Source: Mytilus trossulus
Taxonomy: Eukaryota
DNA: 64,000 bases
Reading direction: 5' to 3'
Assembly (NCBI RefSeq): GCF_036588685.1
Contig: NC_086379.1
Coordinates: forward strand, 4,464,001 to 4,528,000
Made by a program: the position numbers and the translations under genes. The notes beneath the pieces are model-generated. The model was not told the DNA's origin, did no database searches, and saw only the letters and a list, made by a program, of their open reading frames with translations. Below are positions 8,052 through 56,882 of the stretch, piece by piece (position 1 is the stretch's first letter; each line of letters begins with the position of its first letter).

Positions 8052-8112
8052 ATGTCGCATCTAATGTTTGCAGTGTATTTGGTATTAATTTGTTTCCCAA
8101 CATATACCAGTG
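8052..8112 (+). CDS. Gene 1 exon 1, signal peptide MSHLMFAVYLVLICFPTYTS
   Basis: Hydrophobic leader; donor G|gtaaga, phase 1. Confidence 0.8.
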
Positions 8113-11100
8113 GTAAGATCCGTATTTTTATATGCATACTTAATTGTCTTATCTATTTATGGAAATTAGTTTATTATCAAATTTTGACATTTAGTTTCCA
8201 TATCAAACTCATCGTGTCCTGTTTCAATTGTAATATAGACCCTAAGTTAAAATGGCGGATCCAGAAGTGGGAGCCAACTGGCTGCCTTAGAGGGTGGCCC
8301 GCTCCTTTCATGCTTCAGTGATTATCAATATAATCAACAAAATTTGTTCCAGAAAAGGGGGAGTGCTCTCATATTATCTGAGGTTCTTTTTAAAAGACTC
8401 AAGTTTTTGAGGAAAACCTACTCTTTGACAAAAAATGTTACAAGTATTAATCTAATTTCTATCAAATGCCCTCAGTAAATCATGATTGTTCCAAAGGACT
8501 TCATACTGGAACAACAATGACCGACGGGACTGTTAGTTCATCAAGAGTGGTATCTATGCTTATTGAAGCCTTTTGACTATAACAAATGACTAAGTCAAAC
8601 CATCAGGATTTTATTATGTACACTTATCATTATCAACATCAATCTCACATTTTCACCAATATTCCCATATCGACACGAGGAGTCATTCGAGGATTTGATG
8701 GATCTTATTCATTAGAAAATTGATATGCAATTACTCTTTATCGTTTATTTCAGGTGAAAAACAAGAAATTCCCACTAAAATGTCCGTTTAATTTCAACTA
8801 ACATTCTATTTAAATACAGAGAAAAGACGTGTCACAGTACTTGTCTATCCCAAATTCATGTATTTGGTTTTGATGTAATATTTGTTATTCTCGTGGTATT
8901 TTGTCTGATGCTCGATCCGTTTCTGTGTGTGTTACATTTTAGTGATATGTCGTTGCTCTCCTCTTATATTTAATGCGTTTCCCTCGGTTTTAGTTTGTTA
9001 CCCCGATTTTGTTTTTTGTCAATGGATTTATGAGTTTTGAACAGCTATATACTACTGTTGCCTTTATTTAGCCGCATATTATGTTGTTATATATGTCATG
9101 GTTGCTTCCGGGAATTTAGTTTAAGTATATGCAATGATGCATTTACGCTAAAAAGCAATCTAGAAGTAGTTTCTTTTTTAAATAATCAGCTGTGGCATGT
9201 GGTGTAAAGACAGTTGGTGGCAGGAATTTAGGAGGAGGGACATACACGAACTGGGATAACACCACAACTGGTAAGTGAGATTCATTATTATATAGTTGTT
9301 TTGTGATGTTCTGCTTCATTTTCTGATTGTATATGAACTGTTCGTAATTCTAATTTTAAATATATCATATTGTCCATCTTGGTATGTAAAACTGTGGACA
9401 ATAAAACTAATTCTTTACAAACAATCAACAGAATTGGTTAAGAAGTTATTCCATTTATGTTAAACACAAACATTAAAATTCCCTACCATTTCTTCCGGGT
9501 TTATAAAGAAGACGACGATTAAAAAACACTTAGCACATACTTACAACTTCTCGTCCAATCAAATTGCTTGAATTTGCCTTCTAACTTTCACTAGTTCATA
9601 CTTTTTCTGTTTACTAAGTAAATACGCATGAATGACCACAAGGGTAAGATTTCATTGTATTGTAATCAAGATATTGAAATAAACATTGCCAATGGCTATT
9701 TTGAAAAAATGATGTGTTCTAAATTAATCATCTTCGTTTTTATACATGTTATAAGTAGTTTGTAACTAGTTTTTGAATTAATTTTTAAACACACCACTAT
9801 TTAATCTTTGCATCTAAAAATGTTTTTGACAATAAAAGATTATTTCAATTAAATAAAAACTAACACATATAGCTATTTTTAACTTGATAAGGGTGCAATG
9901 CCATCTAAAATTGTAATCATAATAACTATTATAGTACTTTGTACCCCAAAATAGAGTGAACCATGAAACCTTCACTACAGCAATTTGATCTATTTTGTTA
10001 TGAATTGATTGATTATTGATTGCTTAATGTCAAGTGATAGATATTTCATGCATGTAAACTATCCAATAGACTACCTATGGGTACATACATACAATGTACC
10101 AGGGGCAGGTACATCTAGTTTTAAAAACAAGCCCCTCGCTCTAATTTTCATAGTACATTGTATATACCTTTCTATACAATAACCGACACAAAGTAATCAA
10201 ATTATTTCCAGCACCGGAGTGATGAGGCAAAAATACAAACTTGACCTCTAGATTTTTCTGTATAAATACACTTACATCCCAGCTCATTTGTTCTAACAGG
10301 GGTGATCTGAGCCGGATCATCCCTACCAGATCACCCCAGTTGGAGTTTCTTTGTTATGTATGCTTTCCTTTGTTCTGTAACATTTTGATGTCAAATCCAC
10401 TATAAAAAACATATAATTAATTATACGGAAAAGACTATCTATCAAAATTCACGCAGAAAAAAATCCAGTGTATATGCTGGGATTTGAACGCAAGACCTTC
10501 AGCATATCTATCAAGCTGTCTATCGACATGTACCACTACACCAGGACGACTGCATACAAATTAATACCAATTTGACAAACTTAAAGGAAGCAAGATCATT
10601 TTATAAGTGGGACGAATTGTCAGATCTTTATTCAGTGGGGTTTAAAACTTTTTCGTTAATTAGTGAGTTTTTAGACTGATTGTTCAATTTGATCTTACAC
10701 TTTTTCAAAAGTGGGGCGAGTCGGTAAACAAGAGTGGGGCGATTTTTTATAAAGTGGCGATATAGTGTGGGCCGATTGGCAAGTGGGGCGAGTTGACATT
10801 GTTTGATATCTACTCATCGTGTTTGGGGGTCATAAAGGGTATACATCATATAGTAGTATATATACAGTATATTGTATCTGTATCTGTAGTGGAACGTGTA
10901 GAATCCTGTTTAGGCTTTTATACACGGTGGAGAAGAGCGCCGTTGGTATGGGCGGTGTTCTTGTAGAGCGGTCTTAAATGCCTCTACAGAACCTGCATGC
11001 ACAACTTTATCTGGTAGTTGGTTCCAGTGAATAGTTGTTTCCACAAAAAATGAATGTTTGTACTGTGGTTTGTAGCTATTTGGTACTTTAAGTCCTCTGG

Positions 11101-14100
11101 TGTTATTGATAACTTGACGTTCGATGATATTGTCAGTTTCACAGTTTGAATAAGTTTTGGCTTTTATTGTACGTTTTGGTCTTGCTGGTATGACAAAATT
11201 TTCGGCTGGTAGAGCCGGCACCAAACCCTCAACCACCTTGTAAATCCGGATAAGACGAAGGCTGTGTCTTCTTTCCTCTAGCGTCTCCATTTCAAGCTGG
11301 CGTCTCATATTAGTTATGGACCCTGTTTCTCGACTCCTGTAGTTTTTCTTGATGAATCGTAATCCTCTGCTTTGGATACGTTCTAGTTTGTCAATATCCC
11401 CTTTCATATATGGGTTCCAGATCGTTGCGCCATATTCCATTGTTGATCTTACAAGGGATATTTATGCTACTTTCCTACATGCTTCTGGTACGTTCCTCAA
11501 GTTCCTCCAAAGAAAGCCCAAGGTGGCGTTGGCTTTCTTCCTGATATTATTTATGTGGAAGCTCCGTTTTAGATCGTTTGAGATTTGGAGTCCTAAGTAG
11601 GGGTTCACTTGTACTTCTTGTAGGATGTGTTTATTAAGCGTGTAGAATTTGTCTGCTTTTATGTTTATGGATAGAACATAGCACTTTTTGGCGTTGAAAC
11701 GCATTCCCAATTTGTCGGTCCAGATTTCTAGTTGTTCAAAATCTGTGTGTAACATTTGTTGGTCTTGGCTATTTTTAATTGTTCTGTATAGTAGGCAGTC
11801 GTCAGCAAATAGTCTTACTGATGATGTTACACTGTCTGGTAGGTCATTGATGTGGCACAGGAATAGGATTGGTCCTAAGACTGTGCCCTGGGGGACCCCA
11901 GAGTTGACTGTTGTTTCGCCAGATAATTCGCCTTCCACGATGGTTCTCATTGATCTTGCAACTAGGAAGTTCTTAAGCCATTTGTGTGTATTTCCTTTAA
12001 TTTCATACTGATCTAATTTATGTAATAATTTGTTGTGTGGTACTGTGTCGAAAGCTTTTGAAAAATCTAATATGCCTACGTCGATTTGATGTCCCTTGTC
12101 GTGTTCTTGTAAGAAGTCGTTGATGGTAGTTATGAGTTGGGTTTCACATGAGTATCCTGACCTGAAGCCGTGGTTTAAGTTGTAATGGTTATGTTGCGTT
12201 CTAAACTAGATTTTATGAATTGTAAATGGTTTTTCGTCTAATCTAAAACAGCTGGGATGTAAAATAGTTATCCCACTCGGACTTAGTGTGTCAGTGTAGG
12301 ATTACTATTAAAGCCACCTCCTGTCGGAATGGGGTGTTAAATCCCTTGTAGACAGACTGTCACGATCTCTACACGTTAATTCTGAAACTCTTGCAGTAAC
12401 TCTATAAGAGCTCTAAAGGTGACTTGGTGCAAAGCAAAATCTCTGTCCCTTTCTAACTTTCTCTCGTTTTCAGTGGCAGTCCAAATTTCCGGCGGCTTCT
12501 GTGTTTTTAGAACCTTTCTATGATAAGTTAAAACTGTTTGTTTTCGTCCTGATTATGCATGAACTACTAATGGGGTGTTTTGTTCTCTTAAATGGTAAGA
12601 TTAGGGCCTTGATTTTGATTATTTGTTTTAAAAACGTCAATGCGTAGTTTTACACCTTATACTGATTTGTCCTCCCATGCATCAACAACTACGAATTCTT
12701 ACTTTTTAGAAATATAACTTCATCTGGGTTTGCAATACAGTGAGGCACAATTTCAGTGTCATCTATTCTCCAACTTGTGCGCCGGAAATTAATATATATT
12801 TAGAATTTTATGTAGATACTAGTATACAAAATATTCGTCATTTTCAATTGATAACATTTGGTGAAAGTTAACTTAAAGCGAAGGAGAGAGGATAACATCC
12901 GATTTTTTTAAATATGAACAGCCAACCACAATGACAAAAAAGAAGAAGAAGAAAACCTAAAGAAATTAGATGTATCAAAGCGACACGAATGGCCCGTCCC
13001 AAAAAAATTTGAAAAATCTAACTTTTTTAAATTCGTATTCACAAAAGCGTATTTCTAATGCGAATAAAGATAATTCGAATTCGCCAATTCGAATCAATTC
13101 GAATTAAAAAAGAAGAGTGTGTAAACGCGATTTGCGAATTCGATTCGCATTCGTTTGGAATTCAATTCGAATTATATTCTCATTCGTCACATAAAACGTA
13201 TATATTTTTTTTGTATTTATAAAATAAAAACAAACACTTTTTTCATAGAAATAACTCGCCAGCATGTACAGCTCACTGTTATATTTTATTAAATCAAAAT
13301 ATTGAGTTCCGATGTCTTGATATCGGCAACACCGCTGCGTAGTACACGACAGCCTACAAAATAGAAAAACAAAATCAGAAATCATATATACATATATACA
13401 TGTATCTTAATAATCATGGAATAAACAATGTCCTACTGATAATACAAATATCTATCTATCTATGCTTGAAAACAGGGGGAGGGGGTCTTTACCTAAACGA
13501 AGCTGCCTTACTAAACGGTATACGAGCTTCGAATGACAATATATCTTGAATTACTCAAACAAGACAACTATTCGCGCTTTAAAAATCCCGTGCTATTTAC
13601 ATAACAAATATTATACTCAATATATTTACGCAATGCGATAAATATTGATCAATCCGAAATATCATATAACACAAACCTGTTTATCTAATATAAACACGAC
13701 ATAATAGAAAACACGTGTATACTCAACTTTAATAATAATCTAATGTCTGTGTGAATTACGAGGCTTTAAACGTGATCTGTAATTCATCATGGTTAACTAA
13801 CATACCAAAAATTAGCCCAATATCTGAAGGCATTTAGAAAAAAAACTCCGTATAATGGTTTATTGCTGAATGACGGAATGACGGAATTACGGAATTTCGG
13901 AATTTCGGAATTACGCAATCACGGAATTTCGAACGAGGGTAAAACTATATGGCACCGACAACTTTGCAAAAATTTTACAGAAAATTCGAAAAATTGAACA
14001 CCACCAACTTTTAATAGGACAATAGCACACTGTTTGTCGTGATACCCTTTAACCCTTTGGAATATATTTTTTTTAGTAACGGAAAGTCCGGTATGTATAA

Positions 14101-17100
14101 CTTATTTAGTTAACTCAGTATTAATAAATTGTTGTGATTATCTTTATAGGAGCTGGATATTTAGCAAAAGCCTACATTCTAGATTGCTGTGGGCTTTTGA
14201 GTGGATTCAACGTGGAAATAGTTGGACTGGGCACAATATACCTACAAATATGGCGTCAGGCCGGGTCAACATATATACTGGTTCACTCTTCACAATATAA
14301 TTTCAGTACTGGTGAGAGAACATTAAAATGTTCTTCGTTTATATGAAGAATGAAAATTAAATAAGTATTCATATATATTTTAAAAATAAATTATTTATAG
14401 ATTATTTATGTTTTTTTAAACGAGATGCATTTTCTCATTCTCATCTCATCGAAGGGCGGAGCCCTGAGATGAGATGAGATGAGAAAATGCATCGAGTTTA
14501 AAAAAAAAATTATATAATCTATTTATCGCTATTATTTGTATTTTCGAAAATCATTTAATTCAAATTTCAGTAAAAAAAAAAGTATCTTATACGATGATAA
14601 TGCATTTTCTTTTGTGGTACTATTTTTTTGGCGTAGGCTTATTTGATATAAATATGTAGTCGATCAGGTAGTTCATTCATTGAAAAAAAGATGTCTCATC
14701 TGACTACCCGGCGTGTTCAAATATTGCGAGGATCTTTCTCACTGTTGATAAGCTGTAATTTGATGTTTCAACGTATCAAAATGAAGTCAACAGTTGAATA
14801 TATGATGTATTTTCAAAGTAGACGAAAAAATATACATGCAGACAGACCTACGATGATTTGAAGTAAACCAGAGACATATATTATACGTCTCTGAGTAAAC
14901 TTATGTAAAAAAGGATATTTTTTATCTGTTTAAAACATGATTTGATTACTTTTATGAACTTCCAATAAATTATTTAACGGCGAAATTCACGGTAAAATAT
15001 TAAAACGAGAAATCATCTTTGACATTTCATCGCAGTCATCCGATAACTTTTTTTTTATAGTTCCGGCTAATCTTTTCTGATTGGCCGACACTCTAGCGCA
15101 TGAATTAGATTAATACGCTGTTGCTAAGGACCTTAGAAACTAGCGATAATTGTCATTCTCACTCTACACGAGTGATATGAAAATTATCACAAAAAAACAT
15201 CAAAGGAAAAATACAGATAATAGCGATAATAAAAATTATTTAAAAGAAAGTAGGGGTTTAGGTTTTCTATATGAAATGACAGGCGACACATGTTTTGCAT
15301 AAGAGAAAGATTGCAACAGTCGAAAAAATTCAAGACGCAGATATGAAAGCTACTTTTAAATTATTAAAAGCGTTGTCTTTAAAATGCCAATTCAATATTT
15401 TTTTAAAACAACCAAAATTAATCAATCTGTGCAAAAATATTAATAAAAATAAGTTATATTCTTATAAATTGGTTCTTTTAAATGAAAATTCAAATTAAAT
15501 ATCTGTATTCCCGCATCAAATTGTGCTAGTTTGATAGAAAATATGAGGAAAGACACCCATACCACCTTAAAGCACAAATTACAACCATAAGAGGGCCAGC
15601 TATTGTACAGTTTCCTGTATTTTGTATGAATGAGTTAGTTGTTTGTTGTTTTTATCTCAAAGACGACAAAACACATAACAATAGCGTTTATAAAACAAAT
15701 GAGGGGGAGAATATGTTTTATGTGCGAACAAAATTTTTAATAAAGAAAAAAGTGTGAATGTTATAACGCCTTTAAATACAAACTAGTGAATATTAGAAGC
15801 AATCATATAATAATTGAGTTTAAACAGTTTACGCTAAAACACCTTAATGGGGATAACATTTTGTTTTTAAATCCAAATACAGAAACATATGAAAATACGT
15901 ACACGAGGGATGGGAGTATAACTTTTCTTGTAACTATTTCGATTCTTACGTGTTTTATCTTTGTCTTTAGTAATATTAAACTGTATATATCAATCAATCT
16001 TTTTTTGTTGTTGGTAGAATTCTATGTGTGGGATATGTTATTCTATACATTTATCCAATAATTATATAAATGAAATAAAAATATGTATATGATAATTTTA
16101 TTTTTTCAGCTGATGCACTCACAGTTCACTCTCTACCAATAGATGCCGCAGATCAACCAACTATATTGGAGAACGACATGCTAGGATGGTAAGATTCACT
16201 ATTGAACAAATAATGAGCTTCACTTTATGATAAGATTTGAACCTTAACTCTACGATATGATGTTAAGCTTTCATATATGATAGGACAATAAGCTTTTCTA
16301 TAATATAGGATGGTAATTTAGCTTCACTAAATGATGGAACGGTAAACTTCACTATCTGATAGGATGTCAAGCGTCACTATCTGATAGGATGTCAAGCGTC
16401 TCTATCTGATAGGATGTCAAGCGTCACTATCTGATAGGATGTCAAGCGTCACTATCTGATAGGATGTCAAGCGTCACTATCTGATAGGATGTCAAGCGTC
16501 TCTATATGATAGGATGTCAGACGTCACTATCTGATAGGATGACAAACTTCAATATCTGATAGGATGTCAAGCGTCACTATCTGATAGGATGTCAAGTGTC
16601 ACTATCTGATAGTATGTCAAGCGTCACTATCTGATATGATGTCAAGCGTCTCTATCTGATAGGATGTCAAACGTCACTATCTGATAGGATGACAAACTTC
16701 AATATCTGATAGGATGTCAAGCGTCACTATCTGATAGGATGTCAAGCGTCATTATCTAAAAGGATGGTGAGCGTCATTGTCTGATATGATGTCAAGCGTC
16801 AGTATCTGATAGGATGGTAAACGACATTATCTGATAGGATGTCAAGCGTCACTATCTGATAGGATGGTAAGCTTCATTATCTGATAGGATGGTAAGCTTC
16901 ATTATCTGATAGGATGGTAAACGACATTATCTGATACGATGGCAAGCGTCATTGTCTGATAGGATGTCAAGCGTCACTATCTAATAGGATGACAAACTTC
17001 AATATCTGATAGGATGTCAAGCGTCACTATCTGATAGGACGTCAAGCGTCATTATCTGATAGGATGGTGAGCGTCATTGTCTGATATGATGTCAAGCGTC

Positions 17101-20100
17101 AGTATCTGATAGGATGGTATACGACATTATCTGATAAGATGTCAAGCGTCACTATCTGATAGGATGGTAACCTTCATTATCTGATAGGTTGTCAATCGTC
17201 ACTTTCTTATAGGATGGTAAGCGTCATTGTCTGATATGATGTCAAGAGTCACTATCTGATAGGATGTCGAGCGTCACTATTTGATAGGATGTCAAGCGTC
17301 ATTGTCTGAAAGGGACGTCAAGCGTCACTATCTGATAGGATGGTAAACTTCACTATCTGATAGGATTTTAAGCGTGACTATCTGATAGGATGTCAAGCGT
17401 CATTCTCTAATAGGATGTCAAGCGTCATTGTCTGATAGGATGTCAATCGTCACTATCTGGTAGGATGGTAAACTGCACTATCTGATAGGAATTTAAGCAT
17501 GACTATCTGATAGGATGTCAAGTGTCACTTTCTGATAGGATGGTAAGTGCCATTGTCTGATAGGATGTCAAGTGTCACTATCTGATAGGATGTCAAGCGT
17601 CATTGTCTGATAGGATGTCAAGCGTCACTATCTGATAGAATGGTAAACTTCACTATCTAATAGGATGGTAACTTTACTATCTGATAGTATGTCAAGCGTC
17701 TTTACCTGATAGGGGGAGATCTAAAAATATGGTTAACCCCGCCGCATTTTTGCGCCTGTACCAAGTTAGGAGCTTTTGGCCTTTGTTAGTCTTGTATGCT
17801 TTTTAATTTTAGTTTCTTGTGTATAATTTGGAGTTTAGTATGACTTCCATTATTACTGTGCTAGTATGCATAATTTTTAGGGGCCAACTGAAGGACACCT
17901 ATGGGTGCGATAATTTTTCCTATATTGAAGACCCATTGGTGGCATTCGGCTGTTGTCTGCTCTATGGTCGGGTGGTTGTCGCTTTGACACATTTACCATT
18001 TCCTTTCTCAATTTTATTCACTATCTAATAGGATGTCAAGAGTCACTATCTACTAGGATGTTAAGCTTCATTATCTGATAGGATGGTAAGCTTCCTTATT
18101 TGATAGGATGGTAAGCTTCATTATCTGATAGGATGTCAAGCGTCACTATCTGATAGGATGGTAAGCTTCATTATCTGATAGGATGTCAAGCGTCACTATC
18201 TGATAGGATGGTAAGCGTCACTATCTGATAGGATGGTACGCGTCACTTTTTGATAGGATGTCAAGCGTCACTATCTGATAGGATGACAAAATTCACTATC
18301 TGATAGGATGGTAAGCTTCATTATCTGATTGGATGGTAAGCTTCATTATCTGATAGGATGGTAAGCTTCATTATCTAATAGGATGGTAAGCTTCATTATC
18401 TGATATGATGGTAAGCTTCGTTATCTGATAGGATTGTAAGCTTCATTATCTGATAGGATGGTTAGCATCATTATCTGATAGGATGGTTAGCTTCATTATC
18501 TGATAGGATGGTAAGCTTCATTATCTGATAGGATGGTAAGCTTCATTATCTGATAGGATGGTTCGCTTCATTATCTGATTGGATGGTAAGCTTCATTATC
18601 TGATAGGATGGTAAGCTTCATTATCTAATAGGATTGTAAGCTTCATTATCTGATAGGATGGTTAGCATCATTATCTGATAGGATGGTAAGCTTCATTATC
18701 TGATAGGATTGTAAGCTTCATTATCTGATAGGATGGTAAGCTTCATTATCTGATAGGATGGTAAGCTTCATTATCTGATAGGATGGTTCGCTTCATTATC
18801 TGATTAGATGGTAAGCTTCATTATCTGATAGGATGGTAAGCTTCATTATCTGATATGATGGTAAGCTTCATTATCTGATATGATGGTAAGCTTCGTTATC
18901 TGATAGGATTTAAAGCTTCATTATCTGATAGGATGATAAGCTTCATTATCTGATAGGATGGTTAGCATCATTATCTGATAGGATGGTAAGCTTCATTATC
19001 TGATAGGATGGTAAGCTTCATTATCTGATAGGATGGTAAGCTTCATTATCTGATTGGATGGTAAGCACCATTATCTGATAGGATGGTAAACTTCATTATC
19101 TGATATGATTGTAAGCCTCACTAGATTATTGAATGGTGAATTTCTCTTCATGATAGGGAGGTAGGCCTTAAACAATTCTGTGGTCTATGCTTGGAGCTAG
19201 AAATATTATTTTTATATAGTAGTGTTGTTTCTGACTACCCAATATTGGTTTTGTTCATTGTAAAAGGCCTTACTGTGACATTTATTGCTTATAGAAAAGA
19301 CATCGGATAAATAGTTGTCTCATTGGCAATCATATATCATCTTCATATTTTTATATTTAAGAAATATTTTGTCAAGAAATATGCGGAAACAAGAATGTGT
19401 CCACAGTACACGGATGCCCCACTCGCACTATCATTTTCTATGTTTACTGGACCGTGAAATTGGAATAAATTCTCTAATTTGGCATTAAAATTAGAATGAT
19501 CTTATCGAAGGGAACATGTATACTAAGTTTCAAGTTGATTGGACTTCAACTTCATCAAAAACTACCTTGACCAAAAACTTTAACCTGAAGTGTAACAGAC
19601 GGACGAACGAACAGACGGATGGACGAACGAACGGACAAACGGACGCACAGACCAGAAAACATAATGCCCCTCTACTATCGTAGGTGAGGCATAAAAATAA
19701 TGATAAATATTTTCCAAGGAGAAACATCCAGCGAGAAAAAGTAGCACACTTATGTATTGTGAAAGATCTTTGATCTGAAATCACGTCAAAAGTCAGAAAG
19801 GGGCTCCTTAAACCTTAAAAATTAATCAAGTAAACGTTATCATTTTAGCTATTAAGAATATTGCATGCTGACTTCACACATAGGATGTTTCTATTATTAA
19901 AGGTATACTAGTGGAACGGACATGGTACCATACGACAATGGAGCAGGAGCTGTAAATCAGAATTACCGAGTAGATGCCGGATCAGCATCTGGTCCAACGC
20001 CCTTTAATTCTGGGTCTCTTTTAAATGGAAGATCATATGCCATCAATTTTGTAACCGCTGTTAGTGAGTATATATATTTATTGTTTGGTATATCGACAAC

Positions 20101-31880: not shown

Positions 31881-31886
31881 AATAAA
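31881..31886 (+). terminator. Candidate polyadenylation signal of gene 1
   Basis: AATAAA ~730 nt after the stop, followed by T/G-rich sequence. Confidence 0.3.
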
Positions 31887-33630: not shown

Positions 33631-33644
33631 AAATTTGTTGGATG

Positions 33645-36599: not shown

Positions 36600-37006
36600 T
36601 TTTGTACATACGTGTTTTATAACATATCTTATTTAAAAGTCCTTACATAAATTCTTATTACAGTATAAGAAACCAATGTTGCAACTACTGCCGCAAAAAT
36701 ATACCTTATATTGGGTTTTTCTATCATTGTTACATGTATGTTATACTTATAGATCGTAGTATCGATAAGTATTACGGTACTTATGCATGTTATACATCGT
36801 TCGCGTTTAAATATAAATTTCATAAAAAAAAATAAGTGCGATTTTCACGGTTTTAAGTACTTTAATATGTTTAAATACGAATATTTAAATAAGGTTTGGA
36901 AAGAGAATGACTGAAACGGTTACCTCACAATGGTTTCTTATACTGTAATAAGAATATATGTAAGTACTTTTAAATAAAATATGTTATAAATCACGTATGT
37001 ACAAAA
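36600..37006. mobile_element. Fold-back/MITE-like element upstream of gene 2
   Basis: ~80 bp inverted repeats 36600-36680 and 36928-37006. Confidence 0.65.
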
Positions 37007-37221
37007 AAATACTACTGATATACTGATGATGCATGTATATATATATGTGTGTTTTAAATTTTTACTTTAACAAGACACTTATTTATTTATACTTTCTTAT
37101 TTCCTGTCAGAGTGATGTCGTACAACTTGTAATTGTTTCACAGAAGTATGGTGTGATTTATTATGAGTGAACGCATATTAACTTCCTCGTTTTATTTCTT
37201 ATATGAACATGTCCGCCTGAG

Positions 37222-37285
37222 ATGGCCTCAATGATTCGTTCGGAGACATTGGTTATTGTTATTTTATTCTCAGTAAAAATAAAAT
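37222..37285 (+). CDS. Gene 2 exon 1, signal peptide MASMIRSETLVIVILFSVKIK
   Basis: Hydrophobic core, T|gtaagt donor. Confidence 0.75.
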
Positions 37286-46200: not shown

Positions 46201-49200
46201 GGTTTCTAATTCACTTGCTTTGTTTTTACCGAAGATGTATGAATGTATTTTTAATTAAGGAAAACTTTCATTCAGTGGGTCTTGTCATTGATTTCTATCA
46301 AATTTTGTATCCAGATGCGATATAATGATTTTTCGGTCTAAACATCTAAAAAATATTCACTGATCACTAATATTTGTTAAAAGTAATAACATAATATAAG
46401 ACAAAAAATGGAAACATATATATTACAATCGCATAGTTTTTTATGTTTTATATTGATATGCTGCTGGTTTTTAACTTTTTGCTGTACTATAACCAAATAC
46501 AATGTATACGATAGCACGTTGTGGGAAAAAAAATGTAAATGATTATGTTATAAAATTGAGAATGGAAACTGTTTTATTTATTATCATGTCTGTTTGTTCA
46601 CGCGTCGTTGTAAATATAAATTTGATGAGACTGACATACAAATGAGAGGTTTAGCGCTATGAAACCAGGTTCAATTCACCGTTTTCTACTTTTGAAAATG
46701 CCTGTACCAATTCAGGAATATGACAGTTGTTGTGTTTTGTCATTTGATTTTGCCGTTTAATTAGAGACTCTCCGATTAAATTTTTCTCGGAGTTCCTTTT
46801 TTTAATGATTTTACCTATTATGCTTATGTCTCTGTTCAATGGTAATTTTGTCATTGAGAACAATATTTGTTGTTGATGTTTACCTAAACTACGTCCTAGT
46901 ATTCGTTGACCCTTTGAACATGTTTGATAGTTATTATTATTTAAATATTCAACATCACAATTGTGTGACAGAACCCATTTTTTCTGTAACTTGACTTTGA
47001 TTTTATAGTGTCTAAAAATATTTTGTGCACGAAAATGACATATGGACATGCTGTGACTTTATTCCCTTACTTCTTTTGTTTGGAATTGTAGATCATAATG
47101 AGACTGACTTTTTATGAGATAAACAATACGTTTACATGGCGTAGCCATGCGTAAAATGTTCTTCAGCATTTCTCTTCGAAAACAAGGACCTATTTAATGG
47201 AATAAAACGTCTGATTTGGAAACCTTAACTATAGGTGTCACACCACCAATTACTCCCTCCAATTCAGGACGTATGTGAATGTAGGCCTACTGGGACAAAA
47301 ATAGTGCATTTGATGTCATTGTTGACTTAAACTAACCAACAAATTGGCAGAAATGAAACTTTTGTGAAAGAGAAATATATTAAGACCATTTGGAGTTAAA
47401 ATTTACTTGTTTATGAGTTTGCATTCAAAACTGAGGATTAATGCACTCCATTCTATACTAATTTAAGATTTCCAGAAAACCAGGGGCTATTGTTAGTGGT
47501 ACCTCTATTTGGAAGACCTCTTCTTTCTTATATAACTATAAAAATCTGTTGAAAATTGAGATGTAGAAAGCTAATACATGTACGATTCAGGATACACCTG
47601 GTTTCTATGAAATTAAACTTAAGGTAAAATATTCAGAAAGCTGTGAAAATGCAAAATTTGGTTGAACACATAGGGACTTTTAATTGGTGATATGACACTT
47701 ATAACCTCCGGATAGAACAGGCTAATATAAAGTATTTACTTTAAATTTGTTTTAATCAATACACTTGCATAGCAAAAGCAAACAGTTTGAAGGTAAACTA
47801 ATTATTGATCAATCCATTCAAATTGCGTAAGATCCACATCATAATATTTTATATGGGGTAAATCGGGTAGGGCGAAAAAGTAAAATCACAAAAATACTGA
47901 ACTCAGAGAAAATCAATCATTTTAAAAGGTAAAATATGGTGGATTAAATCTGGTTTTATAGCGCTAAACCTCTCACTTTGTACGACAGTCTCATCAAATT
48001 CCGTTATATTTACAATGATGCGTGAACTAAACAGACATAGTAAATAAAATAGTCAAAATATGGGTAACAATTTTAAGAGAAACAATTTCGCGTGTCTGAC
48101 GTCAGAAAATTTATACGTCACATATTTTCGTCGTTCAATGTTTATACTAAAATAAATGACAGATGTTTCCAAGTAAATTTTTTCAAATGTTTTGCAATAA
48201 TTTCAAAAATATATCGTTCTGGATTGGTTTTGTTTTCGGATGCTTCTGTAGTGTATTTGAAGCAGAACAATGTTTGGGCTTCAAGAGTCTACATATTGGT
48301 TGTCTGTGAACAGAAAATGTACAATTTTACAATATCAATTGTTTCACAAATGATAACTAGTCTACAAAGTAAAATCATTTCTTTAAACTTTAAAAAAAAA
48401 ATGCAAAATAAACACATTCCGCTTCAAGGTGGGTAAGTTTTTTAATGCGTGAAACGTTCTGCGTTAGTGATTTGGTCCTGACTAGTGCTGGTGATCAATA
48501 AATATATATGTAAACAAAGACAAAACTGATGATTTGTGACGTTTTCTCCCATACAAAATGAAAGGAAACAGTTCAGATGTTTTGATTTTGTTTCTAATAG
48601 GCTCATAGACAAACAGTGAAGAAATGTCACATCTCTAAACTGTTTCAGTAAGCGTAACACAAACGTTCTCATATTTAAAAATCTCGAACTGAAAAAAATA
48701 TATATAATATGTTCATGGAGTCCGCTTTCCATACCAAAATCCACACAACAAAATTATTTTGTGAAAACCCTGCGGAATTTATTAAAATTGTGCATTTTCT
48801 CAGTAAGAGATATCCTGATTCTGTGCTGGTGGGTCCTTATACGATGCTGGTGACTTTTTGTAAAAAGTTTGTCCTATTTTAAACAAACATAACAGATTCA
48901 ATAAAATTGGGTAGATTATTGTATCAATTGGATTTGTGACTCCTATTTCTTCTTTTTTCCTACCATTCGGCCGTCAAAAAGCGTTTTCAAATAATTGTTA
49001 CAGTTATTTATATAAAGTAAAAGAGCAACATCGTCCGTCAAAAATCAGATGAAAATATATCTAATTAGAATAGTCTTACATAAATTTAATGCCGATCAAT
49101 TGTTGATTATCTACAAAATATGCTAACTAACAAGTAAAAGGTGTTTGAGGTTAAGCGACTTTTATAACGAAAAAAACGTTTGACTAGTTTATTTCAATTG

Positions 49201-52200
49201 AATACACAAGGTAAGCTAATCTAACTACTAGTGTCTCTATTTCTTCCTTAATATATACACTGTCTCCACAGTACATTTTGACAAGATAAAAAAAAAGGAA
49301 CATTGCTTGCTTAAACAACCAGCTAAAACAATAACCAATCCTAGCTTCCAAAATGTAAACGATTAAAAAATGAAAAGGTTTGGCCTGGTTTAAAATTTAA
49401 CTTTGAAAAAAACAAATAAGACAAATTGCAATCATCACTCAAGTCGCTCCTCGTACCCTCCCCATCCCAACACAACCATCCCCTCCTCCATTCCTCCTTT
49501 ATTTGTACGTTTATGCAAAAACACAACACTAAAATTGAGAATGGAAATGGGGAATAAGTCAAAAAGACAAAAAAAAAAAGAGCAGACAACTAAGCACACA
49601 AAATGATAACATAAAGACACAAAATTGGTTAAGAAGAATTTTAAAACTGTGCAGTGTATCTTGTGCTCAAGAATGTAATTGTCATAATATGCATTCATCA
49701 TACATAATAAAGGGCATGTGGAAGTAGTTTTAATTTTATTGTTACCGATGTATCGAGCATTGTAAGTTAAAATACAACGATGATGGAAGTTTTTAAAGAC
49801 ATTGACCTTGACCTTATGTGATAAATAAAACAACAAAAACTTACAATACAAGCGAGTATTTTTTTTATTGAAATCATTATCTTTCAATATGTGATCTATG
49901 CATAGAATATGTAGAATTGAGAAAGAAATAGTATTTATCTCAGATTTGAAATTATTATTTTTTTATTTGTTTTGGTTTGGGAGGGGAAGGGGCTGAAAAC
50001 GGTAGGATAAAAAGAAAATTCTTAACTGTATTGGACAATTTTGTTAAAAAAAAACCTAACTATATCCAGAATGGTTCGGCTACCCTGACTTTATTAACTG
50101 AACTCACATCTTTCAATCTGTTTAATTCAGGTCTTGAGCTGTCATGAAAATAACTGCTAGTAGTCCATTGTAATACTTTAGTTTTCTATTCTAACACGGA
50201 CTAGGCTTTCATTTAAGGTGAATTTACTGTGCGTATTTCTGTTTTCGTGTTTATTCTAAATTGGCTAGAGGTATAAGGAGGGCTGATATATCGCAAATTA
50301 TAATCTGAATGCATTTATTTTATATGTATCTTTATATCTGCGTTTCTTTTATATCATCAACTCGTTATTGAATGTGTCTGTACTCATCGTAGATATTGTA
50401 TAGATGAAATTTCCATGTGAGGTAAAACCCAGTTGCATACAGCTAAAGATCACTTCAAATTATAACACAAAAAATCCGTTGTTTCATGCCAGTACCGAAG
50501 TATTGTACAATCTGGGATTTGCAATAGATTTATGAAAAAAATTATGTTCAATCCCAAGTAACAAATGAAATAGTCAATCTTTAAAATGTATTTTAAAATA
50601 GTAGCTGTGTATACACACATTATATTCACAACTGTCAAACATACTTTCAACTGACTTTTCCAAGAATGTACACACTATTACATATTTTTGATAAAGTTAG
50701 TTTTATTTTATCATTAACTTCTTCCTTTCACAATCAAGTATTTCAATTCATAGGGAAATAAATATTCAGCAGCGATCTTTCGGTGACCAGTCAGCGGTCT
50801 AAGGTTTACGTATTCCTTTTTAGCTCACCTGGCCCGAAGGGCCAAGTGAGCTTTTCTCATCACTTGGCGTCCGGCGTCCGGCGTCGTCCGTCGTCGTCGT
50901 CGTCGTCCGTCGTCGTCCTGCGTCCGGCGTTAACTTTTACAAAAATCTTCTCCTCTGAAACTACTAGGCCAAATTTAACCAAACTTGGCCACAATCATCA
51001 TTGGGGTATCTTGTTTAAAAATTGTGTCCGGTGACCCCGCCAACTAACCAAGATGGCCGCCATGGCTATAAATAGAACATAGGGGTAAAATGCAGTTTTT
51101 GGCTTATAACTCAAAAACCAAAGCATTTAGGGCAAATCTGACATGATGTCATATTGTTAATCAGGTTTAGATCTATCTGCCTTGAAATTTTCAGATGAAT
51201 CTGACATTCCGTTGTTAGGTTGCTGCCCCTGAATTGGTAATTTTAAGGAAATTTTGTTGTTTTTGGTTATTATCTTGAATATTATTTTAGATAGAGATAA
51301 ACTGTAAAAAGCAATAATGTTCAGCAAAGTAAGATGTACAAAAAAGTCAACATGACCAAAATGATCAGTTGACCACTTTAGGAGTTATTGCCCTTTATAT
51401 TCAATTTTTAACCATTTTTCGTAAATCTTAGTAATCTTTTAGAAAAATCTTCTCCCCTGAAACTGCTGGGCCAAATTATTTGAAACTTGGCCACAATCAT
51501 CATTGGGGTATCTAGTTTAAAAATTGTGTCCGGTGACCTGGCCATCAAACCAAGATGGCCGCCACGGCTAAAAATAGAACATAGGGGTAAAATGCAGTTT
51601 TTGGCTTATAACTCAAAAACCAAATAATTTAGAGAAAATCTGACATGAAGTAAAATTGTTAATCAGGTCAAGATCTATCTGCCCTGAAATTTTCAGATGA
51701 ATTGGACAACCTGTTTTTGGGTTGCGGCCCCTGAATTGGTAATTTTAAGGAAATTTTGCTGTTTTTGGTTATTATATTGAATATTATTATAGATATAGGT
51801 AAACTGTAAACAGCAATAATGTTCAGCAAAGTAAGATCTACAAATAAGTCAACATGAACGAAATGGTCAATTGACCCCTGTAGGAGTTATTGACCTTTGT
51901 AGTCAATTTTCAATCTGCTTCCTTTGTTTAATATTCACATAGACAAGGTGAGCGACACAGGCTCTTTAGAGCCTCTAGTTTTTAAAGCAAGTTGTTTTGT
52001 GTATCCCTAATGACTTAATTCTTCGAATCTTTTCTTTAAAACTAAAACAACAGAAAAGTTAAGTTCAGATAATACAACAGAATTATCACGTGTGTGTGTA
52101 ACTGTGAAGTATAATAAGGATTATATCTCAATAAATGAATAAGAGCAACAGTATTACACCGCTGTGTTTTGTTTGAAGCATTACTGTAATGAATATCATT

Positions 52201-54167
52201 GACAACACATACAGTTTATTATAAATTTACTTTTACAGTATTCGATGGTCCAATAATTTCCGAAACGATTACATTTATCAATGATTAATGTGATCATCAT
52301 ATGCAACATATAGTTAAACCATTAACAAACAAAAAACAGACTTGTAATGTTATGGAAATTGGATTGCTTCCGTTGTAATCACGATAAACATTTCATGAGA
52401 AGTTTTTTTTGTATATCCAATGTATAAAATTAAAAGTTATCTTTATTATAAAGTGCAGTTTATTCAAACATTTGACAAAAGGTTGCCCTGAAGTATAAAC
52501 GCACAGCACCTGAGATCACCCCTAGATTTTGGTGGGGTTCGTGTTGTTTATTCTTTAGTTTTCTATGTTGTGTCATGTGTACTATTGTTTTTCTGTTTGT
52601 CTTTTTCATTTTTAGTCATGGCTTTGTCAGTTTGTTTTAGATTTATGAGTTTGACTGTCCCTTTGGTATCTTTCGTCCCTCTTCTACTAAGTGCATGTGC
52701 AGGTAGATATGTAAAATCTGAGGTAAACGCCCCTTAATTACTCAAAAACGTACACAAAGTAAACACGTGTTTACGCGGATAGACATTAAAAATATTTTAA
52801 CTGCTTTAAGTTCATAAAATAAACACAAGTTTACTAAAAACGCAGATCTTTGTGTAAACAAAAAATGTGTACGAGTGTATACGTTAAATTCTTTTAGTCT
52901 GCACCCAAATGTACAAACACGTGTTATAGCATTTTAATAACTGAAGACTTCAAATTTAACCTCCGTGTTGCACCAGCGCTAGTTCTTTATTTATATATTA
53001 ACTGGTTGGCCATATTATTACTGCAATGCACTGGTGTCCTGAACATTTTCAATAATACTTTACTGCTAAATGGGATATTCAAAGGCCTAAACAATTCTGA
53101 GCCTAAATCTATAATTTTAAAACACAAGTAATGTAAAATACTGATGTATTTAGAGAAGAATTATGCCAGGTAATCGGTTTGACGTGGAATTAAAAACTAT
53201 TTTCAAATAGATAAAGGTTGTGAGGTCGTGTTTTTTACATTTCAGTTTTCAACCATCTATTGCATATATGTATATATCAAGATAAAACCCGTCGAACCAC
53301 CAACGACCTAATAAAGTAATATACCTAAGGACAAATTTATTTTGAAAGGTTGCGTCGTTGGATTTGTGACTAGAGGTCAGTAAAAAAGCAAATGAAAGCT
53401 AAATGGCACTAAATGCACTGAGTAAACAATGATATTCGATGTGATATGATTGCCATTGGGACAACTGACTTCAGTTCAAAGGTAATGGTATATAAGCCTC
53501 TATAGAAAGCATGGCCATTAAAAATAGAAAAAAAATACCGGGATGATTCTAGTGAAGGTTGTATCTATTTGTTATAGTTTCACCATTTATTTGTTAATTG
53601 TTGGTTTTTACTTCAAACATTTGTTATTTATTAAATAGTATCACCATAATTTTTTTACAATTGTCTTTACAGAAAATAGACCTAGATTTAGCCCTAAATG
53701 TTTAGCGGTAGAGTTGAGAGAGGATAAAAATTATACATTGCTGGCTGTTAACTGCACAGACAAATATAAGGCACTATGCGTTTTGAAATCAACAATAGGT
53801 AATTAAAAAAATAATAAACCTGTTTCAGTTTAGTACAACGGTATTAACAAAGACAAATTAAATGATTTCAAAATTGTTATTTCATTATCAATATGATGTT
53901 TGTCATAACACTTTAACAATATACTTTTACCTATGCATATGTTCTGAGATATTTAAAACATAATTCATAGTAGACTTGAACCGAACCCTGTTCTTATCGA
54001 ATCCTTAAACATTTTATTTATTGGTGCATAGAGGTTTGGTTGGATATTGAATATCAAATATCGTCGTTTTATATAAAAAAACAAACATTATATTACAGAA
54101 CCTTCAACTCATTTGAATGCACAACAAGGAACTACTTACCCAAATGATACTGCTGAAATAACAACGG
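37222..54167 (+). CDS. Gene 2 (3'-partial): WSC and C-type-lectin-like domain protein, probable type I membrane receptor
   Basis: join(37222..37285,38227..38451,40962..41104,44198..44375,45252..45377,45918..46118,53673..53798,54099..54167)=1132 nt; GT-AG, phases 1,1,0,1,1,1,1,1; no stops; WSC motifs YKGCY…C-x3-C…GFKCYC…C-x3-CPGD…CGG; CTL-like NWYDAQQTC and C-x17-C-x7-C. Confidence 0.82.
37345..37780 (+). repeat. Diverged ~215-bp tandem duplication in gene 2 intron 1
   Basis: gaaatcagaaatt…ggtttatcatttataacgcca…acaacagcaaggttctt…catactaga occurs twice. Confidence 0.85.
38227..38451 (+). CDS. Gene 2 exon 2, CTL-like N-half (AFENAKPLC…VVWINAYVVHSSVMEYK)
   Basis: tgtag| acceptor (in-frame alternative +6), |gtaaat donor, 225 nt open. 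Confidence 0.8.
40962..41104 (+). CDS. Gene 2 exon 3, WSC N-half (GCY…CSRFCKSKGY…LLQ)
   Basis: tttag| acceptor, CAG|gtaatt donor. Confidence 0.85.
42189..42912. mobile_element. Kolobok-type fold-back MITE
   Basis: TTAA|GGTTCCAC…GTGGAACC|TTAA; ~300 bp near-perfect TIRs. Confidence 0.88.
43400..43965 (-). pseudogene. Decayed Penelope-like RT fragment (N-terminal part of RT)
   Basis: MYRLPK…FISAASKCS…FCNKIHENSGINCLWS…FDSVDSFD with frameshifts. Confidence 0.7.
44198..44375 (+). CDS. Gene 2 exon 4, WSC C-half (GFKCYC…CSKDCPGDEIDRCGG…)
   Basis: tag| acceptor phase 0; classic WSC cysteine spacing. Confidence 0.88.
45252..45377 (+). CDS. Gene 2 exon 5, CTL-like C-half (KKCFY…GNCLQKLKFKCQ)
   Basis: 126 nt phase 1-1; same length and Cys spacing as exon 7. 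Confidence 0.82.
45918..46118 (+). CDS. Gene 2 exon 6, second CTL-like N-half (RLNWYDAQQTCLQEKSYLP…W…IVW)
   Basis: 201 nt phase 1-1; |gtaaga donor. Confidence 0.85.
50817..51982 (-). mobile_element. Helentron-associated non-autonomous element (HINE/DINE-like) with a tandem ~502-bp core
   Basis: TTTTTAGCTCACCT…AGGTGAGC subterminal inverted repeats, terminal hairpins, (CGT)n microsatellite, core units at 50941 and 51443. Confidence 0.85.
52506..52683 (+). mobile_element. Short 3'-terminal copy of the 6576-7240 element
   Basis: Near-identical to 7062-7240. Confidence 0.85.
53673..53798 (+). CDS. Gene 2 exon 7, second CTL-like C-half (PKCLAV…LAVNCTDKYKALCV)
   Basis: tttacag| acceptor, |gtaatt donor, 126 nt. 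Confidence 0.85.
54099..54167 (+). CDS. Gene 2 exon 8, Ser/Thr-rich stalk (EPSTHLNAQQGTTYPNDTAEITT)
   Basis: tacag| acceptor, G|gtagat donor, 69 nt phase 1-1. Confidence 0.7.
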
Positions 54168-55097: not shown

Positions 55098-56205
55098 TTA
55101 AGACCCCGAAACTGTATTCCAAAAGAGTGTAATGAGTAAAAACACCCCGAAGTCATAAAAGCTTAAGTTTAACTTTCACTCGATTTTAATCGTAAGATTT
55201 ATTCGCATGAGATCTAATCATTTGCTAATAGCTACATGCATAGACACATTTTTAGTTTTAAAAATAGTTAAGTTCTTAGAAAATAAATCCAAACACGATT
55301 TTATCTACAACCATTATAGAAATTAATGGCTTACTTTGACCGACATTTTAAAGGTTTTAAAAATGTTAAAAGTGCAAATGTTTCATGCATCTTCATCAGA
55401 ATTTACTATAGGATTAAACACATTATTCTAGAGGTTATTGATGTGTAAACCGGGGCGATTAACTCACAACCTGAATAAAAGTCCGAAGGACTTTTATGTT
55501 GAGTTTGTTAGTAAGAGCCTTATAACTCTTCAGCCAAACATTTGTGATATTTAATAAACATTGTTTTTTATGGATACTATATACATTTATCAACAAAGGC
55601 ACAACGGCAAGTCGCACCTAAGGAGTATGCCGCCATCTTGACCTCATAAAAACCATAAATGTCCGATAAATACAACGGAATCTTAAATTGAATAGCACCT
55701 ACCTCAAAAACTTCATTTTCATTAAATGTTATCCGAATTTGAAATGTTCAAGTGACGAAATAATCTTTCCCTTGAAAATTTCTATTCGTATGACGTCGTT
55801 TTTTGCCATTACGTAAATTCGCCTAATCCCTCATGAAATTTCGCGTTTTTTTCAAAGTTTATTTTTATACATTTTCAAAGCTTTAGTGCATTAAAACATA
55901 TTTCTTTTTTTGTTATATACGCACTAGAATAGTCACAACAAATCTCAATTTGCTGAAAATCCTGGGATCACTGCAAGCTTGTGTATCGCGCATGAATAGA
56001 TTACAAAAGTAGTTTCGGAAACATGGTTTATCGAAGTGTAAACTTAGAATCTTAGAGAAAAATTCTCATTGACCAATCCAATTCAAGTATTCATAGATAT
56101 GCAAATCATATAAGAATTATTTAACATTGTTTGTTGCATCGCGGTTGAACTCCAATCTATCTTGAAACTTTTGAAATATAATAAATAAGAAATCTGTTAA
56201 ATTAC

Positions 56206-56882
56206 AAACATTCATTTACAAAGCAAATTCAAATGCTCAAAAGCATCTGACCAAATTGGACAGTAAGAAAGGAACGCAATATTGATTGATTGATTGATTT
56301 ATTGTTGCTGTTTTAGCGCCACGTTTGAGCGTCACATTTTCGTGGCGATCATTTTTATAGGTGAAGGAAACCTGATTGCCCGGAGATAACCAACGACCTT
56401 TTGTAGGAAAACTGACAGTCCTAGTCAGTTAAGATTGGAGTCCAGTGCATCCCGAGTAATTGAACACATGGTTCAAATCTTTTTTGTGGTAAATGACGAC
56501 ATAGATCGGCACCTAATCACGGAAATGAGAATAAGTATTTTAATATCTGCAAATACATTAAAAAATCTAAGCAGACCATGGTTAAGTTTAAGTTCTCATA
56601 CCTTTTTTTTTAATTTTCGGGTGGAAATCCGATTTTGAAATAACAACAATTCCTGAACAAAAAAACTCCAGTTTTTGCCTTTTATCCTACATGATTGAAA
56701 TAGGGAAATAGCAAATTAGACCATTTTTTTTTTACCACGGTACAGTGTGTCCAATAGTATTATATATGGAAAATGCATGGCCTTATATCATTTCTTTTGT
56801 TGACTAGTATATCAAGCGTCTTTCAATACATAATAGCTCAGAGTACACATGTAGTTTAACAAATGGCATGAATGTAGCACAG
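56206..56882 (+). repeat. Intronic segment paralogous to 26859-27815
   Basis: Colinear similarity including a shared embedded SINE-like fragment and both of its flanks. Confidence 0.9.

Follow-up and report, generated by a model that had tools for sequence, protein, structure and literature searches.

A probable chimeric membrane receptor gene in Mytilus trossulus, with a cadherin-like ectodomain on the transmembrane and tail exons of a neighbouring receptor array

Genes and exons at the locus

The window, by which we mean the whole stretch of 64,000 nucleotides of Mytilus trossulus DNA that was analysed, carries gene 1 (LOC134726114), which RefSeq labels just "uncharacterized protein" and on which our literature searches found no paper. 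The exons, paralogous blocks and junction described here lie on the plus strand, and positions beyond the window end are marked ext. Exon 1 (8052-8112) holds the start codon and signal peptide, matches the N-terminus of the M. edulis protein P0006 and ends in the donor G/GTAAGA. Exon 2 (9190-9270, phase 1-1) was placed by its splice sites and by a tblastn match to P0006 residues 17-44 (96% identity), and exon 3 (14150-14311), an N-terminal domain of unknown family, by tblastn matches to P0001 and P0006 (86-88%). The internal Met at which the RefSeq model P0007 begins, without the signal-peptide exons, lies in exon 4 (16110-16188). It is followed by exon 5 (19903-20063, matched by P0007 and P0001 in tblastn), exon 6 (21789-21965), exon 7 (24078-24196) and exon 8 (25048-25219), the last of which is 100% identical to P0007 and encodes the N-terminal half of the final complete cadherin-like repeat. 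Exon 9 (26280-26447) ends in NIEPVIDVLP at the phase-1 donor CCA A/gtaagt, and exon 10 (30153-30228), also present in P0007, opens at a phase-1 acceptor and encodes the transmembrane (TM) segment (N)AVIFGLVGGVTGLFVVVALVIVFIK. Finally, exon 11 (30589-31147) encodes a cytoplasmic tail of five 36-aa units and the stop codon. The exons were searched singly, with the database proteins P0001, P0006 and P0007 standing for joined models; the coordinates of the 11 exons add up to 1815 nt, that is, 604 aa and a stop, in agreement with the open joined frame originally proposed.

Likeness of the ectodomain to cadherins is found at sub-threshold level. The Pfam Cadherin profile (PF00028) stayed below its gathering score of 28.8 bits in all gene 1 models and in the parental gene on contig C11 described below, reaching 22.8 bits in P0007 (exons 8-9), 22.0 in P0001, 15 in P0006 and 23.8 in the last C11 exon, with each match spanning nearly the full profile. 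The top phmmer matches in the PDB were all to cadherin-23 EC1-2 (E 0.006-0.09), and a protein atlas pointed to cadherin-like/Big_9 clusters at 0.87, which we take as a lead only. The linkers retained in gene 1, VKNTAPE and VEKNIEP, are degenerate when compared with the DxNDNxP-type Ca2+-binding motif that separates the ~110-aa repeats of cadherins. An AlphaFold2 model of P0006, computed from the single sequence without an alignment, had a mean pLDDT of 33. Word-indexed protein searches with P0001, with residues 1-392 of P0006 and with P0009 returned four proteins each, all from Mytilus.

In the tail of gene 1, four units read YQDL-x10-YDVM and one reads YQDL-x10-YDEL; near its start the tail exon is specific to gene 1 (about 30627-30700). 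A single canonical ITAM (YxxL/I-x6-12-YxxL/I), YQDLTPDREENNTPYDEL, is present in gene 1, in gene 2 and in the M. edulis orthologues, and the M. coruscus protein P0003 has two. Judging from these motifs, the tail may signal through phosphotyrosine and a tandem-SH2 (Syk-type) kinase.

Downstream lies gene 2 (LOC134724508), onto which P0002 and P0009 map with 100% identity as CTLD, stalk, TM and tail. Its WSC/CTLD-type ectodomain exons occupy 38220-54167, among them 45320-45379, ~45936-46117, 53673-53798 and an alternative stalk exon at 54099-54167, and comparison upheld the view that this ectodomain is unrelated to that of gene 1. The Pfam Lectin_C profile remained under its gathering score in P0002 and P0009 (17.4-17.7 bits versus 22.6), as did WSC in P0003 (24.5 versus 27.8), so the C-type lectin and WSC receptors discussed here are best described as family-like and not as certified members. 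The original prediction was that gene 2 would continue past the window into an AVIFG-type TM exon and a YQDL tail. Both were found ~4.5-5 kb past the window end: the TM exon at ext 68520-68595 is 96% identical to that of gene 1 over 159 nt including flanks, and the tail paralogue lies at ext 69055-69321, on the same strand and downstream of gene 2. The TM exon does follow the intron that resembles that of gene 1, as expected, but a 63-nt stalk mini-exon (ext 64575-64637) intervenes. In the third array member, gene 3, no such TM/tail module was found within 70 kb.

The last long intron of gene 2 houses an LTR retrotransposon on the minus strand (56926-64000, on to ext 64058), with minus-strand gag-pol-like ORFs, LTRs at 56926-57499 and ext 63350-64058 that are 94-95% identical, and the target-site duplication TTGAT. 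That this element had delivered the 1.29-kb segment with the stalk mini-exon was considered and rejected, because the element has a TTGAT duplication of its own and the segment is single-copy.

Homologies on the two sides of the junction

The starting observation was a colinear match of ~680 bp between two phase-1 introns, one before the TM exon of gene 1 and the other in gene 2. Alignment reproduced it, with both introns in phase 1: positions 26854-27373 match 56200-56715 with 77.6% identity (E 6e-110), and 27660-27813 match 56715-56880 with 81%. Between the two segments, gene 1 alone carries a young repeat insertion (27374-27659), 99.6% identical to c11rc 18849-19120 (c11rc denoting coordinates on contig C11) and absent from the copy in gene 2. 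The match marks the left-hand end of a colinear duplication of >12 kb, in which 26833-39907 corresponds to 56150-56880 and then to ext 65301-82845; besides intergenic DNA, this duplication contains the exons for the TM segment and the YQDL tail and the opening exons of the WSC/CTLD gene that comes next. We divided it into blocks. T1 (26833-31147), the 3′ part of a WSC/CTLD array unit (intron, TM, intron, tail), is colinear with 56150-56880 plus ext 65301-69559 (T2) at a non-exonic K2P of 0.167. I1 (31148-38200) is intergenic and has its paralogue in the stretch that separates genes 2 and 3 (I2); it aligns with ext 69322-78600 at 0.154, and E2, the gene 2 ectodomain exons, with the gene 3 exons at ext 78603-95637 (E3) at 0.155. 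The order along the array is thus Cad, T1 I1 E2, T2 I2 E3, where Cad stands for the cadherin block. A genome-wide search of 1.3 Gb found exactly one close paralogue of the tail exon, that of gene 2.

Paralogy of the two introns had been argued from the fact that the match spans a SINE fragment together with both its flanks. The conclusion is right, because colinearity is kept for >12 kb, past TM, tail and intergenic sequence and on into the gene that follows; the argument is unsafe alone, because the flanks themselves belong to a dispersed repeat, TE-X (89 candidates, 69-81% identity). The SINE core is dispersed as well, with >1700 first-look candidates in the genome. When the 680-bp segment was checked for being a high-copy repeat, its parts proved to be dispersed, but the composite of TE-X and nested SINE occurs in two copies genome-wide, both here; the copy in gene 2 (56150-56880) forms the left edge of T2. 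We regard as practically negligible the explanation that the likeness of the introns is shared transposable-element debris between unrelated neighbours: the dispersal of SINE core and flanks favours it, and it is refuted by 12 kb of colinear single-copy homology with two coding exons and by the restriction of the tail exon to two copies.

Upstream of the TM exon the homology is of another origin. The cadherin block (2413-26830) is a partial copy, ~24 kb long, of a long cadherin-like gene that lies on contig C11, on another chromosome than gene 1. It is colinear with c11rc 9000-40372 in blastn at 66-90% identity and comprises ~5.6 kb of 5′ flank, exons 1-9 and the first 383 bp of the intron that follows. 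Outside the exons, K2P over 5314 nt amounts to 0.121, and the nine exons are open in both copies with a dN/dS of 0.39. The sole close paralogue of exon 9 genome-wide is in C11 (93% aa identity). Because gene 1 ends its ectodomain abruptly at NIEPVIDVLP, the original prediction took this stretch for the first strand of a next cadherin repeat and called for a parental gene extending past it. Both expectations were borne out. In C11, whose exon structure and splicing we read from sequence, NIEPVINVLP begins a further cadherin-like repeat that is completed in the next phase-1 exon (c11rc 40515 onward), and past NIEPVINVLP there are in all five more open exons, a TM segment of its own, a tail and a stop. 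The distal phase-1 exons bear the linkers DINDRPV, VTDVNE and EEINDNPP; the TM segment is AWFIPAMIALAVMAALIGYMIY and the short Cys-rich tail of 20 residues is RCCRVPGFCARLFSDTCGCL. Gene 1 therefore lacks the parent's ~four distal repeats, stalk, TM and Cys-rich tail. No annotated C11 product was found among proteins in the searched length range.

The two homologies abut at 26826-26838, 380 bp past the phase-1 donor 26447, with C11-type intron on the left and, on the right, WSC/CTLD-array intron inside the TE-X copy. C11 homology stops at ~26828-26830 and TE-X/gene 2 homology begins at ~26833, without filler and with a few A/T-rich bases that are ambiguous; it is because both parent genes survive that the join can be mapped to ~ten bases. 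A reading of the ~25 bp at 26830-26854 as filler, with the edge of the T block as the repeat end, was rejected, because other TE-X copies extend leftwards and the repeat is here cut at ~26830. The TM acceptor at 30153 is in phase 1, as is the next exon of C11, and exon 9 would splice in frame to a foreign TM exon because all the introns involved are in phase 1. These findings agree with the proposal that recombination within introns exchanged ectodomains on a shared module. The wider proposal of a modular, domain-swapping receptor cluster is not supported: it has one swap to build on, and in the 1.3-Gb genome the TM/tail occurs in two genes and the WSC exon in two.

Order of events and competing explanations

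The K2P values of the T1/T2, I1/I2 and E2/E3 pairs (~0.154-0.167), set against 0.121 for the cadherin block, suggest an order. Tandem duplication of WSC/CTLD receptor units in the array would be the oldest step (K2P ~0.16), and later the ~24-kb partial C11 copy would have been placed in front of the 3′ portion of an array unit, with the join falling inside an intron of phase 1. Because the T1/T2 split predates the cadherin copy, T1 had another 5′ partner earlier; its original ectodomain exons were presumably lost from upstream of T1, and no remnants of displaced ectodomain exons were found within 58 kb upstream. Both events would precede the split of M. edulis and M. trossulus, after which the M. 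trossulus tail probably expanded from 2 to 5 units. The predicted product has a signal peptide, the N-terminal domain, cadherin-like repeats, the TM segment and a dual-tyrosine tail with one unit forming a canonical ITAM. From the sequence comparisons, we consider it highly probable that gene 1 is a chimeric type-I membrane receptor that arose through DNA-level exon shuffling, with a C11 cadherin-like front and an array-derived TM and tail.

An explanation of reverse polarity holds that the TM/tail is native to gene 1 or to a third gene, and that gene 2 is the chimera, formed where the copies meet in one tandem duplication of a segment made up of TM-tail, intergenic DNA and WSC/CTLD ectodomain. 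The order of the array, with gene 3 lacking the module, could be explained by such a single duplication with intronic breakpoints, and the T, I and E blocks are equal in K2P. Nevertheless, the 5′ half of gene 1 is a truncated copy of a gene having its own TM and tail, so the module is not native to gene 1, and we rejected gene 1 as its native owner. Moreover, the separation of T1 and T2 is older than the copying of the cadherin block, and the M. coruscus protein P0003 pairs a WSC-type N-terminus with a 72%-identical tail, in a model without TM. We consider reverse polarity unlikely; it can be partly true for gene 2, with the chimeric origin of gene 1 unaffected. It is plausible that the tail originally belonged to the WSC/CTLD family, a reading which rests on gene 2 and the odd M. 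coruscus model because gene 3 lacks the module.

A second explanation is that a dead partial cadherin duplicate lies beside relic TM/tail exons and that gene predictors joined the two through fitting phases, which match by chance in one case of three. The RefSeq model starting from an internal Met, with the signal-peptide exons missing, fits this view, as does the lack of a junction read among those listed. Against it stand the eleven exons (604 codons), open despite a dS of ~0.19 and with a dN/dS of 0.39, and a tail repeat that grew in frame. Where exon 9 meets the TM exon, P0007 agrees with the window in every letter, and the M. edulis proteins P0001 and P0006, from two annotation pipelines, show the same exon join and architecture at 93-98% aa identity with gene 1. 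These two independent models and P0007 also show that the junction is no misassembly. We aligned RNA contigs from four runs over 25900-31300. Exon-limited contigs cover exons 9, 10 and 11, leave unique intron sequence uncovered and respect the acceptors 26280 and 30589: the alignment of contig X3#17 starts exactly at 26280 and leaves 47 letters on its upstream side unaligned, and contigs X3#23 and X2#14 are near-identical to the tail exon. Reads joining 26447 to 30153 had been expected; no such joint was among those listed. The contigs on the TM exon carry in all four runs the gene 2 letters 30193A/30196A/30197T and are therefore unassignable to gene 1; as the M. edulis orthologue of gene 1 has the same letters, these contigs do not tell which gene they come from. 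The predicted join in gene 1 rests on the three gene models. We give very little credence to the dead duplicate; the absence of stops and frameshifts, the dN/dS and the M. edulis orthologue show that gene 1 has been maintained by selection.

Gene 1 among known chimeric genes and receptors

Gene 1, read as a chimera, is a clean new case of an already known process, exon shuffling. In Drosophila, young chimeric genes arise by partial duplication and illegitimate or repeat-associated recombination, for example Hun Hunaphu (PMC1463047); repeat-mediated cases have been surveyed (PMC2211543), and tandem-duplication chimeras are described in D. yakuba (PMC5460883). Gene 1 resembles them in that part of a parent gene, its 5′ region included, was copied and attached to the exons of a gene unrelated to it, that the fusion point is non-coding (for gene 1, within a copy of a dispersed repeat) and that the two parents have been retained. 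Gene 1 differs in being a type-I receptor of a bivalve in which a whole TM and signalling tail were exchanged, with the donor on another chromosome and a tandem receptor array as acceptor.

Phase-1 exon shuffling is the textbook origin of modular animal surface receptors, and the Gilbert/Patthy model, in which extracellular modules are shuffled by way of phase 1-1 introns, has mostly been inferred from ancient events. The C11 exons near the break, the gene 2 stalk exons and the TM acceptor are all in phase 1, in line with this model, and for that reason the swap stayed in frame. Unlike the ancient cases, gene 1 has a junction mapped to ~10 bp and introns that are alignable with both donor loci. 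Vertebrate paired or variant immune receptors of the KIR, Ly49 and CLEC types exchange ectodomains and tails by recombination within a cluster. Genes 1 and 2 are likewise neighbours that share a TM and a tyrosine-motif tail under different ectodomains, and a tract of high identity surrounds their TM exons, but they are not related in sequence to the vertebrate families, the module is in two genes only and the source of the new ectodomain is a different chromosome. ITAMs are also borne by Drosophila Draper and by engineered chimeric antigen receptors; like them, gene 1 would be a single-pass protein whose recognition domain is coupled directly to its own YxxL-x10-YxxL tail, whereas 4 of its 5 units end in YxxM, off the ITAM consensus, and its signalling is putative.

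The surviving donors, the breakpoint mapped to ~ten bases in a repeat copy, the relative timing from neutral divergence and a product conserved in at least two species make gene 1 useful for teaching and for studies of mechanism. It is also a candidate for studying whether bivalves employ ITAM-type signalling in receptors confined to one lineage, be it for immunity or for recognising cells. A tentative, rather doubtful further reading is that gene 1 is an activating receptor restricted to the Mytilus edulis complex, in which a cadherin-like ectodomain for recognition or adhesion sits directly on an ITAM-type tail, the rapid in-frame expansion from 2 to 5 units in M. trossulus tuned signalling strength, and gene conversion or selection kept the TM exon near-identical to that of the donor family. 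If this were true, nature would in gene 1 have produced the equivalent of an engineered chimeric receptor.

The parental cadherin-like gene and the junction

Exon 9 of M. trossulus gene 1 (LOC134726114; window C7:4464001-4528000), which joins a cadherin-like ectodomain to a transmembrane (TM) exon and tail, has exactly one close paralogue, located on contig C11, with 93% amino acid identity and the same donor. C11 has all nine ectodomain exons, each with an open frame, and the DNA homology is colinear, 2413-26830 matching 9000-40372 of c11rc, the reverse complement of C11:48305001-48385000. Beyond the homology boundary phase-1 exons continue on C11: the first finishes the repeat opened by NIEPVINVLP, later ones carry the linkers DINDRPV, VTDVNE and EEINDNPP, and a final frame of 282 codons encodes a stalk rich in Thr, Asn and Gly, followed by the TM AWFIPAMIALAVMAALIGYMIY and, before the stop, the tail RCCRVPGFCARLFSDTCGCL. 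The long parental gene expected to continue past NIEPVI(D/N)VLP was therefore located, and since it runs on with its own repeats, TM and tail, we consider the C11 gene the likely complete parent and gene 1 a truncated derivative. The copy brought 5.6 kb of 5′ flank with it, which points to a promoter that the chimera received from the parent. The large satellites in the introns of gene 1 (16182-19130, starting at the donor of exon 4; 22100-23600; 25400-26200) are older than the copy, because the parent has them too (c11rc 24235-25774, 34083-35844 and 39424-39607). The second intron also holds reverse-transcriptase-like ORFs on the minus strand (10913-12205), a non-LTR element fragment.

Homology to C11 stops at about 26828-26830. 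Alignment with other copies of TE-X, a dispersed repeat, showed that TE-X runs on leftwards in gene 2 (LOC134724508) and is cut at about 26833 in gene 1, which places the crossover within 26826-26838, without filler, 380 bp past the exon 9 donor and 3.3 kb ahead of the TM exon acceptor, both phase 1. With homology to two sources meeting at this point, the proposal that intronic recombination swapped ectodomains on a TM/tail module is supported. In the M. galloprovincialis model P0008, the NIEPVIDVLP exon runs straight into a LINE endonuclease ORF. This model is probably erroneous; it also shows that transposons target the intron after this exon in a third species.

Immediately past the junction, the original prediction had matched 26859-27815 to 56206-56882 in the intron of gene 2. 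Alignment bore this out, with 77.6% identity between 26854-27373 and 56200-56715 and 81% between 27660-27813 and 56715-56880, the gene 1 copy containing a young insertion (27374-27659). The argument that a SINE matching together with both flanks implies paralogy is unsafe alone, because the pieces are themselves repeats: the SINE core gave more than 1700 first-look candidates genome-wide and the TE-X flanks 89 (69-81% identity), some of which, on C11 and C3, lack the SINE. The composite segment occurs only at these two places in the whole genome. The very young repeat at 27374-27659 and 3676-3949 is 99.3-99.6% identical to C11 copies and very deeply covered in all four transcriptome-like runs.

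The WSC/CTLD array and the origin of the tail

The intron match lies at the margin of a large duplication, and colinearity was unbroken when the comparison was carried beyond the window end (ext, window numbering continued past 64000). The segment 27814-30309 matches ext 65301-68676, with the TM exon (30153-30228) matching ext 68520-68595 at 96% identity over 159 nt; 30306-31374, containing the tail exon, matches ext 68778-69559; and, beyond colinear intergenic DNA, the first exons of gene 2 (37566-38605) match its next WSC/CTLD paralogue, gene 3, at ext 77988-78991. The two share ectodomain exons up to 54175 and ext 95637, gene 3 (ext 78603-95637) being colinear across both the CTLD and the first stalk exon. 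A YQDL-type TM/tail for gene 3 was searched for over 70 kb and none was found; further downstream are an Ig-like ORF (ext 106720-107301) and a TM-like ORF (ext 114286-114396), possibly parts of a different gene. From the colinearity and the lack of such a TM/tail in gene 3, the locus order is therefore Cad / T1 I1 E2 / T2 I2 E3, where Cad is the cadherin block and T, I and E are numbered copies of the TM/tail, intergenic and WSC/CTLD ectodomain blocks.

In the 1.3 Gb of the genome, a single close paralogue of the tail exon exists; it lies on the same strand, downstream of gene 2 (ext 69055-69321). Together with the TM exon at ext 68520-68595, it provides the AVIFG-type TM and YQDL tail predicted for gene 2, and the RefSeq proteins P0002 and P0009 use both, mapping at 100% to its CTLD, stalk, TM and tail exons. 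Relative to gene 1, gene 2 is interrupted by a clean minus-strand LTR retrotransposon insertion (56926 to ext 64058; LTRs 94-95% identical; target-site duplication TTGAT) inside a single-copy 1.29-kb segment (56881-56925 plus ext 64064-65303). The element has long gag-pol-like ORFs and inserted later than the array duplication. The segment, which also contains a 63-nt stalk mini-exon of phase 1-1 (ext 64575-64637), has no counterpart in gene 1 at 27813|27814; a deletion in the gene 1 lineage is the simplest explanation. Genes 1 and 2 are 90-100% identical over a tract around the TM exon (30057-30292) that extends about 95 bp into the intron upstream and 60 bp into the one downstream. Aligned intron nearby is about 85% identical, a contrast that points to gene conversion or to strong constraint on splicing or the TM.

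Since the parent carries a TM and tail of its own, this tail cannot have originated in the cadherin lineage. It lies within the colinear array of WSC/CTLD genes, and in the M. coruscus model P0003 a 72%-identical tail is joined to N-terminal exons of WSC type; the tail is probably native to that family. No trace of the displaced ectodomain exons was found up to 58 kb upstream. K2P divergence over non-exonic positions is 0.167 for T1 and T2, 0.154 for I1 and I2 and 0.155 for E2 and E3, against 0.121 for the cadherin block and C11, values that place the array duplication, one event or several coeval ones, before the cadherin block was copied. Before that, T1 must have had a different 5′ partner. 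The nine cadherin-derived exons show a dS of 0.186 and a dN/dS of 0.39, with neither copy disrupted.

Gene model, transcripts and predicted product

The RefSeq model of gene 1 (XP_063446582.1, P0007) agrees with the window at every letter, from an internal Met in exon 4 through VLP-N-AVIFGLVGG to a five-unit tail, and M. edulis P0006 supplied the signal-peptide exons (8052-8112 and 9190-9270). By arithmetic on exon coordinates, the eleven exons total 1815 nt, or 604 aa and a stop. P0006 and the separately annotated M. edulis RefSeq model P0001 have the same architecture, with ectodomain identity of 93-98% and a TM identical to that of M. trossulus gene 2. Of the 36-aa tail units (30589-31147), M. 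trossulus gene 1 has five, a recent in-frame expansion; gene 2 and the M. edulis orthologues each have two. P0001, isoform X2, has an alternative first exon matching 12528-12626, a start that seems unavailable in M. trossulus because Lys replaces the initiator Met. Contigs from four transcriptome-like runs lie on exons 9, 10 and 11, with unique intron sequence almost empty; one match begins exactly at 26280 and another 7 nt ahead of 30589, and none of the contig matches listed bridges 26447 to 30153.

The product would be a type-I protein combining cadherin-like repeats with an N-terminal domain of unknown family. Scores against the Pfam Cadherin profile are 22-24 bits, under the 28.8-bit cut-off, and the best PDB matches are to cadherin-23 (E 0.006 and weaker). 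Its tail comprises four YQDL-x10-YDVM units and one canonical ITAM, YQDL-x10-YDEL. As far as sequence can indicate, a likely consequence of the swap is that the cadherin-like domain, sensing a ligand or adhesion, would act through phosphotyrosine signalling instead of the parent's short Cys-rich tail. The broader claim of a generally modular, domain-swapping receptor cluster was not demonstrated. A full-text literature search found no paper on gene 1; chimeric genes arising via partial duplication and illegitimate or repeat-associated recombination are well documented elsewhere (PMC1463047, PMC2211543, PMC5460883), and gene 1 is a well-resolved new example of this known evolutionary mechanism.
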